Positions 13,995 to 15,293 are shown, numbered from the stretch's first letter. The stretch is DNA of 32,000 nt from Wallemia ichthyophaga EXF-994 (GCF_000400465.1 NW_008806289.1:90001-122000); one strand, 5' to 3'. Numbers and translations are program-made. Notes: generated from the sequence alone by a model not told the origin.

Positions 13995-15293
13995 TTAAGC
14001 AGCAACTCTGCCAGTGACTTCACCTTCGACAATTTCAGATGACTTAAGCGACTCGATGGCAGTGTGAGCAGCTCTAACACCAGACTAGTCGCGAGTCAGC
14101 AAAGCATTACCATCAACCCAATTCACTCACGCCAAACATACCACCAAACGAGGCACCGCAGCGAGGAGCACCGTCTAATTCGGACAACTCCATACCACCA
14201 ACGACCAAACCTGGGAAAACTTCCCTAGTTTGGTTGACAATTTGATCTTCACTCTTGTTCATATCGAGTGCCCTCATATCGCCGAGCTCAACAAATCCAG
14301 CCGAAGCAAGTCTCTTGACAGAGAAAGCACCGAAAGGACCGTCGTGGCCGCAGAATGAGATGGTCACTGGTGAGGTAATGGTGTTTGGATCCATGCTATG
14401 ACACTGTCAGACATTACCACCACATAAACCCCCTACACACCAAGATTGAGTGTCATGGTTAAGCGAAACTAACGTCCAGTTGGACACGATACCAGTAACA
14501 CGTTGCTTTCCTTCAAAGTCTTTCTTCACCATCTAGTCGCGTAAGAAGTTAGAACAGCTAATGCCAGTGCGAAAGACCTCGACTTACAAGATCTTCACAC
14601 TACAACAGCTGCGCGTTAGTACAAGCCCATTAAAGGGCACCTCTAAATTCAAATGCAACTCGACGACGCAGCCATAACGCTGGTCCCGCTATTGACGGTA
14701 TATTCTCAGCCTGAGCGTCTGCTCTAGGCACCCGTGTGCACGAATAAAGAAGCATTGTAAAAGTAGAAAGTGCCTCTATAAACAATAGATATACCTACCG
14801 CAGTCGCGTTGAAGAGCTTGACGTTAGGAAGGGCCAGAGTCTTGGCGAGAAGAGTTGAAGTGAGGAGAGCTGCGTGCTTGACAACAACAAAGCGACCTTC
14901 GTCTTCGTATGGGACGCCAACCTTATCAAGGAAATTGTGCGCTGGTTTGCGTACAACCATTGCTGAAAAAAGTTGACCTCCGAGCCAAGCACCGCCACCT
15001 GGAGCAACTGCTGATTCGACGATTGTCACCTTGAGATCGGGTCTCTCGGTGGCAATCGTGAATGCGCATGATAGACCAGCGCTACCAGCACCGACGATCA
15101 ATACATCAGAGATGGCTCTGTCGTACATGTCGTTAAAGTAGCGCGTTGTCATTGCTCTAGATGTCTCATACTCCTTGATTGGTGCGAAGCTGTAGTTGCC
15201 ATTGTAGTCTTCGTTAGAATCGGCGTGGGCTTTAGCTTGTTGCTTGAGTTGCTGGATGTTAGCTGGTTGTTGTGCTGCTTGAACTGGTGCCAT
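13995..15293 (-). CDS. THI4: Thiazole synthase Thi4; exons 15293..14799, 14599..14588, 14532..14441, 14395..14131, 14084..13995; about 317 aa
   Basis: [51 protein letters not shown]|CEDL, NHDTQSC|[25 protein letters not shown]. Four GT-AG introns restore frame. Confidence 0.95.
14653..14741 (-). promoter_or_regulatory. TPP (THI-box) riboswitch aptamer in THI4 intron 1
   Basis: Minus strand reads GUGCACAC-GGGUG-CCUAGAGC agac GCUCAGG-CUGAGA-AUAUACCG-UCAAUA-GCGGGAC-CAGC guuaug GCUG-CG-UCGUCGAGUUGCAU. It has the GGGUG and CUGAGA..UACC signatures, a paired P3, a paired P5 with a 6-nt loop, GCG, and a P1. It sits in a thiamine-biosynthesis gene. Confidence 0.85.

Follow-up and report, generated by a model that had tools for sequence, protein, structure and literature searches.

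A compact candidate TPP riboswitch with a register-shifting long-range helix in intron 1 of THI4 in Wallemia

To our knowledge, the mechanisms of eukaryotic riboswitches have been dissected in only a handful of cases, and all validated fungal examples use competing 5' splice sites. Here, we analysed intron 1 of THI4, which encodes thiazole synthase, on the minus strand of a 32,000-nucleotide (nt) stretch of DNA from the salt-loving fungus Wallemia ichthyophaga EXF-994 (GCF_000400465.1 NW_008806289.1:90001-122000; hereafter, the window, with positions counted from its first letter). This intron carries a putative thiamine pyrophosphate (TPP) aptamer between two complementary elements, A near the 5' splice site and B upstream of the branch site. 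With moderate confidence, we read intron 1 of THI4 in Wallemia as a TPP riboswitch that uses a register-shifting long-range helix as its expression platform.

In NCU01977 of Neurospora crassa, the 3' shoulder of P1 pairs, without TPP, with an element close to the 5' splice site (alpha:alpha'), which promotes productive splicing (PMC3597705), while TPP locks P1 and diverts splicing (Li & Breaker 2013, PMC3597705). NCU01977 is the 'Type II' riboswitch of Mukherjee et al. 2018 and resides in a 650-900 nt intron of a gene of the DUR3/urea-transporter family (PMC5882874). The Wallemia intron is similar in that it lies between coding exons, that the long-range helix and P1 exclude each other, and that the intron ends are brought together; specifically, the 3' side of P1 has a complementary element close to the 5' splice site, and their predicted pairing excludes P1. 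The comparison with NCU01977 had been drawn in an earlier note on this DNA and proved apt. By contrast, the paired elements are separated by ~100 nt in Wallemia and by ~530 nt in NCU01977, the intron has 199 nt instead of 650-900 nt, the host gene is THI4 and not a DUR3-like transporter, and the stretch from the element to the aptamer is free of alternative 5' splice sites; thus, neither the long intron and gene nor the donors of Type II are found. Moreover, the Wallemia helix passes the P1-3' strand and continues into the flank element B, which has alternative partners of its own, i.e. P0 and the hairpin HpB.

As summarised in PMC3597705 and PMC5997356, the riboswitches of N. crassa NMT1 and THI4 (Cheah et al. 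2007) lie in introns of the 5' untranslated region, with P4/P5 masking a second 5' splice site and with upstream open reading frames (ORFs). Judged by these summaries, the Wallemia locus shares with them an intronic TPP aptamer in a gene of thiamine biosynthesis, THI4 itself being one of the N. crassa genes, and presumably the control of splicing; it differs in that the intron interrupts codon 165/166 and has no second donor. In the Wallemia intron, no pairing of P4/P5 with the flanks exceeded a probability of 0.15, which sets it apart from Type I. Mukherjee et al. 2018 (PMC5882874) also predicted 'Type III' riboswitches in internal introns, W. ichthyophaga NMT1 among them. These share with Wallemia THI4 the organism, an internal intron (about 200-400 nt) and an off-state in which a premature stop is expected; however, Type III needs two donors with a stop between them, upstream of the aptamer, whereas Wallemia THI4 lacks a second donor and its first in-frame stop is a UAG within P3 (14726..14724).

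For the algal THIC and THI4 riboswitches (Croft et al. 2007), branch-point masking or an alternative exon was proposed, as presented in PMC5997356. In that account, an intron in the coding region of a thiamine-biosynthesis gene likewise holds the aptamer, and stop codons result from unproductive splicing; it describes no long-range anti-P1 helix, and the algal systems are set apart here by description and not by sequence. Finally, long budding-yeast introns have constitutive zipper stems (references 37-40 of PMC3597705), in which, as cited there, complementary segments past the 5' splice site and before the branch site shorten the effective intron as in Wallemia; the Wallemia stem differs in that it overlaps the closing helix of a predicted ligand-binding aptamer.

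In surveys, Wallemia is listed with an NMT1 riboswitch only and not with one in THI4 (supplement of PMC5882874), and among Basidiomycota, a 2024 survey of medically relevant fungi reported TPP riboswitches associated with THI4 from Rhodotorula mucilaginosa only (PMC11683625). Literature that pairs Wallemia with a riboswitch was not found beyond the NMT1 entry in that supplementary table, a prior mention in Moldovan et al. 2018 not being excluded. In total, we rate the aptamer class and the switching logic as already known, and the host gene, the position, the size and the absence of alternative donors as new. The locus probably represents a known splicing switch in a new, compact version, wired differently from the proposal in the earlier note, in which A pairs either with B or with a strand of the aptamer.

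Intron 1 of THI4 and its putative aptamer

Homologous loci were retrieved via exon-1 ORF fragments and represent five lineages: W. ichthyophaga (two alleles), W. mellicola, W. hederae, sp5 (Logan SRR25399871) and sp3, a more distant lineage known from metagenomes only with an exon 1 that is 85% identical at the protein level. Eleven distinct intron sequences were obtained, which agree in the codon at which the intron lies, in the aptamer core and in the 12-nt micro-exon that follows; the length of intron 1 varies among the lineages from 199 to 263 nt.

In the window, THI4 was assembled from five exons (Table 1) and encodes a product of 317 amino acids (aa). The spliced model matches the W. ichthyophaga EXF-994 protein EOQ99701.1 (P0256) with 100% identity and the proteins of W. 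mellicola and W. hederae with 91-94%. Intron 1 splits codons 165/166 of the ORF, and is ~4 times longer than the local norm given by the remaining three introns of 55, 45 and 46 nt, in agreement with the norm of ~50 nt put forward in the earlier note. Retention of intron 1 places the UAG inside P3 in frame, 24 codons into the intron, and results in a premature stop in all lineages, with read-through ORFs of 172-221 aa vs the 165 codons of exon 1. No plausible second or internal donor was found in intron 1, i.e. there is no internal GU with the GURNGU-type consensus of the four real donors of the gene; the sole gene model with an internal donor (GUUGCA, P0241) is a prediction that translates the aptamer. 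Without a credible alternative donor, simple retention is the expected off-state.

The Rfam model of the TPP aptamer, RF00059, matched the intron at 14745-14643 with 25 bits (E = 0.045 in a 2.5-kb scan) over its full length (model positions 1-105). This alignment retains GGGUGCC, GGCUGAGA, ACCGU and the P4/P5 core and lacks P3a; the features of the aptamer core are present, including P2 to GGGUGCC, J3/2 CUGAGA, P2' ACC, P4/P5 with the GCG bulge and the five-helix architecture. Matches of 24-29 bits were obtained at the same intron position in three further lineages. All aptamer core columns are invariant in 9 sequences, and over the ichthyophaga, mellicola, hederae and sp5 lineages sequence identity reaches 91-94% for the aptamer vs 80-89% for exon 1 and 61-69% for intron 2. 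Between this clade and sp3, distal P3 changes from GAG/CUC to GGAC/GUCC and outer P1 from AUUC/GAAU to CUAA/UUAG with pairing kept in both, together giving one independent contrast; within the clade, two-sided compensatory changes in the aptamer helices were not found. Rfam in gathering mode gave no match, nor did an E-value scan (E ≤ 0.5) of the whole 32,000-nt window, and a tRNA scan of the whole window gave no genes. A metagenome scan with the invariant 24-mer of the aptamer gave 0 matches. The host gene, THI4, is a gene of thiamine metabolism. On the basis of context and conservation, we accept the intron-1 element as a TPP aptamer that would bind TPP; the earlier note had recognised the region as a TPP-aptamer intron, and this part of its interpretation is supported.

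Table 1. Features of THI4 and of its intron 1 in the window, with the basis or a remark for each
Feature	Position	Strand	Basis or remark
THI4 exon 1	14799..15293	minus	165 codons, ends ...NATA; spliced-model match to EOQ99701.1
THI4 intron 1, 199 nt, with the candidate riboswitch	14600..14798	minus	GUAGGU...UACUAAC...UAG
THI4 micro-exon, 12 nt, UGUGAAGAUCUU (CEDL)	14588..14599	minus	between intron 1 and the 55-nt intron 2
THI4 exon 3	14532-14441	minus	gene model
THI4 exon 4	14395-14131	minus	gene model
THI4 exon 5	14084-13995	minus	gene model
5' splice site GUAGGU	14798..14793	minus	sequence
HpA, local hairpin UCUAU/AUAGA	14775..14789	minus	uses 5' half of A when unpaired from B; aptamer-forced folds
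Element A, UAGAGGCACUUUCUA, outer 5' strand of the long-range helix	14764..14778	minus	folding and lineage comparison
Anti-P1, UUUAcAAUGCuuCUU, inner 5' strand	14747..14761	minus	pairs with J4/1 and P1-3' (GAG..GCAUU-UGAA); pair probabilities 0.78-0.93 in the free ensemble
P0 5' strand, GCUUCU	14748..14753	minus	directly 5' of P1, overlaps anti-P1; pairs with AGAGGU of B when the aptamer is folded
Putative TPP aptamer, helices P1-P5, P3a absent	14647..14745	minus	RF00059, 25 bits, E=0.045; CUGAGA at the J3/2 junction
Aptamer P2/P3 strand, GGGUGCCU	14733..14726	minus	sequence
P1-3' strand	14657..14647	minus	sequence
Element B, UAGAGGUGCCCUUUA, outer 3' strand	14631..14645	minus	5' half pairs alternatively in P0, GCCC alternatively in HpB
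HpB, hairpin GCCC-UUUAAU-GGGC	14625..14638	minus	3 nt upstream of branch site; competes with the A:B core
Branch-site consensus UACUAAC	14615..14621	minus	sequence; UACUAAC or CUGAC in relatives
Productive acceptor AG	14601-14600	minus	gene model

The public gene models disagree at the micro-exon. The W. mellicola model P0003 omits its four residues, while the W. ichthyophaga model P0241 translates 47 aa of intron 1 via the internal GUUGCA donor. In W. ichthyophaga, the end of exon 1 and the 5' splice site (GCGGUAGGUAUA, window 14790-14801) are complementary to the branch region (UGUACUAACGC, 14611-14623; both on the minus strand) and pair with probabilities of 0.9-1.0 in both conformers of the intron described below; in the other lineages, the 5' splice site uses different partners. 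The gene order RICTOR-like, Mdm34, THI4, Gti1/Pac2 and VWA (window ~12900-21600) is common to all genomic Wallemia loci fetched (L001, L007 and L011).

The long-range helix and the competing fold

A, B and GGGUGCCU lie on the minus strand exactly where the earlier note had placed them, to the letter. The intron's minimum-energy fold contains A:B as a helix of 12 base pairs (bp) with 2 bulges and pair probabilities of 0.6-0.93. The helix of ~14 bp with two bulges described in the earlier note is, thus, present in the fold, but it is only the outer part of a duplex of ~24 bp: from A:B, the helix runs inward unbroken, with UUUAcAAUGC (14761-14752) pairing with GCAUU-UGAA of P1-3', and CUU pairing with GAG of J4/1. 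Accordingly, the inner part, anti-P1, takes up the P1-3' strand. The helix loops out the aptamer and leaves ~55 nt of unpaired intron, which is near the local norm of 45-55 nt, as had been claimed.

Duplex energies were compared with those of dinucleotide shuffles. In the window, A:B alone (5' flank with 3' flank) reached -16.3 kcal/mol vs -10.3 ± 2.2 kcal/mol for the shuffles, with 5/300 as good, and the full duplex (5' flank with J4/1, P1-3' and 3' flank) reached -26.5 vs -13.6 ± 2.8 kcal/mol, with 0/500 as good. For the full duplex in the other lineages, the values were -31.1 and -29.7 vs -16.6 ± 3.2 and -16.3 ± 3.4 kcal/mol in two variants of sp3 (0/500 and 1/500, respectively), -20.2 vs -12.1 ± 2.3 kcal/mol in sp5 (2/500), -21.6 vs -15.3 ± 3.0 kcal/mol in W. 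mellicola (18/500) and -23.4 vs -18.0 ± 3.3 kcal/mol in W. hederae (31/500). Moreover, every lineage has the long-range helix in its minimum-energy fold or in one close to it.

In sp3, the outer helix, ACGGGUA-gaa-UUUAUA / UAUAAA-aag-UACCCGU, is unrelated in sequence to GGCACUU-CUA / UAG-AGGUGCC of the window, and it lies at the equivalent place, 27 nt past the 5' splice site and 11 nt before UACUAAC. It leads directly into AAUGC:GCAUU and AACUU:GAGUU, with AAUGC of anti-P1 kept. The P1-3' strand of sp3 has UAGAG where the window has UUGAA, and both partners match this change, i.e. P1-5' (CUAA vs AUUC) and anti-P1 (UCUCU vs UUUA). In a MAFFT alignment of seven clade sequences, 91.5% of the cells are paired for the fold with the long-range helix (conformer I) and 98.5% for the fold with the closed aptamer (conformer II) vs 28-48% with the partners slid. 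The changes within the clade are one-sided and compatible with wobble pairing, including C-G/U-G swaps in A:B and a G-to-A change in B of W. hederae that suits both A and P0. For the earlier note's expectation that A and B are conserved and covary, the helix is indeed conserved, with a different outer sequence in sp3, but two-sided changes in the clade number 0. Support for the predicted helix rests on conservation, above-chance complementarity and one deep contrast with sp3, and not on covariation statistics. In total, we conclude that A:B is a genuine conserved long-range helix and the outer part of a longer duplex.

As a stand-in for TPP binding, the aptamer helices were forced in the folding model. 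In the ichthyophaga clade, P0 (GCUUCU:AGAGGU) then extends P1 with a probability of 0.87-1.0, GCCC of B closes HpB with GGGC, and A is set free. P0 is invariant in the clade, with 98% of the cells paired. The HpB stem is kept in five of the five lineages, while its loop varies (UUUAAU, UUCACU, UAACAA and AUCUUUG); in sp3, HpB is CCC-GUAA-GGG or CCC-GAAA-GGG, the GNRA loop being maintained through a U-to-A change. Counterparts of HpA are CUAUAU/AUAUAG in W. hederae and sp5 and CUCUAU/AUAGAG in the second W. ichthyophaga allele, L007, and W. mellicola lacks HpA. Forcing the aptamer and the A:B core into one fold costs 5-9 kcal/mol over the aptamer alone in the ichthyophaga clade, because P0 takes the 5' half of B; with the aptamer and A:B made incompatible in this way, a helix between A and the aptamer that destroys the ligand pocket is not needed. 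In this clade, the energies of the P1-constrained and the anti-P1-constrained ensembles agree to within about ±3 kcal/mol. Folding with and without the aptamer constrained, as the earlier note had suggested, gave A:B in the free fold and its loss with the aptamer, but the pairing of A with the aptamer was not populated. In total, the elements are present, conserved and complementary above chance, and in silico the two folds exclude each other and are nearly degenerate. Together, the models and the comparison support that the element with two partners is the 3' strand, consisting of J4/1, P1-3' and B, and that this strand can shift its register.

The variants of the locus include several that touch these helices. 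The second W. ichthyophaga-like allele (L007:3496-3696; also L008 and L009) has a 2-nt CU insertion just past the 5' splice site, equivalent to window 14785-14790, which lengthens the hairpin with A (CUCUAU/AUAGAG), moves the predicted ligand-free equilibrium from the long-range helix to P1/P0 and abolishes the in-frame stop in P3; J2/4 of this allele carries an A-to-G change (window 14691). In the sp3 variants L021 and L023, the last base of B', the sp3 counterpart of B, is altered in the HpB region (UACCCGU to UACCCGA, at about 215-225 of the intron); this causes loss of the terminal A':B' pair, while the HpB GNRA tetraloop is kept (GUAA to GAAA). In L023, a C-to-G change, which may be an assembly error, breaks one P5 pair.

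The proposed switch and alternative readings

In conformer I, proposed for the TPP-free state, the 3' strand of J4/1, P1-3' and B would pair with A and anti-P1 over ~24 bp; P1 would be unzipped and the aptamer looped out, leaving 21 nt and 34 nt of unpaired intron. In conformer II, proposed for the TPP-bound state, P1-3' would close P1, the 5' half of B would extend P1 as P0, GCCC of B and GGGC would form HpB just before the branch site, and A would be released, in most lineages into a local hairpin beside the 5' splice site. Conformer I would be the efficiently spliced form and yield functional THI4, while conformer II would favour intron retention, and the in-frame stop 24 codons into the intron would shut off THI4. 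We infer this polarity from the analogy with NCU01977 and the feedback logic of a biosynthetic gene. By the same analogy, the two folds would affect splicing in this direction, with TPP turning THI4 off via intron retention and a premature stop. Only tentatively, and as a possibility on the doubtful side, we propose that the riboswitch gates a constitutive coding-region intron without alternative splice sites by sliding one 3' strand between two registers, in a fungus with ~50-nt introns.

Several observations weigh against a register-shifting riboswitch. The 25 bits of the aptamer fall below the RF00059 gathering score of 54.3, i.e. it is not a formal Rfam member, and its L5 loop is UUAU/UCAU instead of UAAU. 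The fold energy of the whole intron is unremarkable (z = -1.1). In the clade alignment, 0 pairs show two-sided compensatory changes in either conformer, and column shuffles were equally good. The comparison covers five lineages only, and the sp3 flanks are not alignable column by column. In sp3, the outer helix coexists with the aptamer at an extra cost of 0-2 kcal/mol, and the anti-P1 conformer (I) is favoured by 5-7 kcal/mol. Finally, the accessibility of the 5' splice site and of the branch site and the graph distance between the two do not differ consistently between the conformers across the lineages, and with local hairpins counted, both conformers leave ~55 nt of effective intron.

The coexistence of helix and aptamer in sp3 is what would be expected if A:B were a constitutive zipper, i.e. 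a clamp that works regardless of the ligand, makes an intron of four times the usual length more compact and might also aid aptamer folding, with TPP acting via another contact. Zipper stems aid the splicing of long yeast introns, as cited in PMC3597705, and the ~55 nt unpaired remainder matches the local intron norm. However, the helix runs unbroken into J4/1 and P1-3' in all lineages and is, therefore, incompatible with P1, the aptamer of the ichthyophaga clade draws half of B into P0 at the cost to A:B given above, and HpB, a conserved competitor for B, would be pointless in a static clamp; we consider a constitutive zipper unlikely. That the intron has no present-day regulatory function, the aptamer being a decaying relic and the complementarity of the flanks being due to chance or derived from a repeat (UAGAG occurs three times), is in our view very unlikely: the aptamer is conserved above the flanking coding sequence across five lineages, sp3 retains the helix with a new sequence, and the HpB stem is conserved while its loops drift, even though the sub-threshold Rfam score, the lack of formal covariation in the clade and the whole-intron z of only -1.1 would all fit a relic.

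The model of the earlier note, in which A toggles between B and the 5' strand of P2/P3 (AGGCACUU:GGGUGCCU) and TPP decides by protecting the pocket, is hardly tenable. The 8-bp complementarity on which it was built exists in the sequence, and W. mellicola, W. hederae and sp5 retain 7-8 bp of it, but it does not exceed chance: the best duplex of the 5' flank with the aptamer reaches -13.9 kcal/mol vs -18.5 ± 2.9 kcal/mol for the shuffles, with 287/300 shuffled flanks as good or better. Enforcing A:GGGUGCCU costs 8.9 kcal/mol in the window and 5-9.5 kcal/mol elsewhere, and its probability is ≤0.03 at every modelled nascent-transcript length from nucleotide 72 to 199; on the basis of the shuffles, the enforced-pair energies and the nascent-length ensembles, we rejected this pairing as a populated state. 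Moreover, the pairing is absent from sp3, in which A' resembles the P2 strand and does not complement it, and its retention in the close relatives is trivial because B and the P2/P3 strand share GGUGCC.

The two conformers of the register-shifting riboswitch might also be read out differently, with TPP-bound conformer II being the spliced form (ON) or with the switch selecting a 3' splice site or inclusion of the micro-exon. The accessibilities in the models argue consistently for neither direction, the public gene models skip or mis-join the micro-exon, and splicing to an AG 7 nt past the branch adenosine would, in the window, create an in-frame UAG; nevertheless, the end product of a biosynthetic pathway is expected to repress the gene, as in every validated eukaryotic TPP riboswitch, and the proximal AG is missing in W. 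hederae, leading us to regard a different output as improbable. An AG this near the branch site is too close for a normal acceptor. This AG lies at window 14609-14610 on the minus strand, and its use would read CUG UUG UAG; W. mellicola, sp5 and sp3 have an AG at a comparable position. Choice of the branch-proximal AG as an alternative 3' splice site was rejected, since the AG is not conserved in W. hederae. Likewise, masking of the 5' splice site by the strand freed in conformer II (UCUAC:GUAGG in the window and UCUCUUA:UAAGAGA in sp3) was at chance level, with the exception of one sp3 variant (22/1000).

Standard Rfam annotation misses the aptamer at 25 bits. This explains why surveys report almost no THI4 riboswitches in Basidiomycota and why the public Wallemia gene models disagree at intron 1 and the micro-exon. 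If the register-shifting riboswitch is correct, it would be the first described THI4 coding-intron TPP riboswitch in Basidiomycota, and would represent a minimal, portable design of an 'intron on/off' kind as well as a small cassette with which ligand-controlled splicing could be engineered. If the ligand acts only by re-registering a long-range helix, then this compact (~200 nt) conserved example would broaden the mechanistic repertoire of eukaryotic riboswitches.

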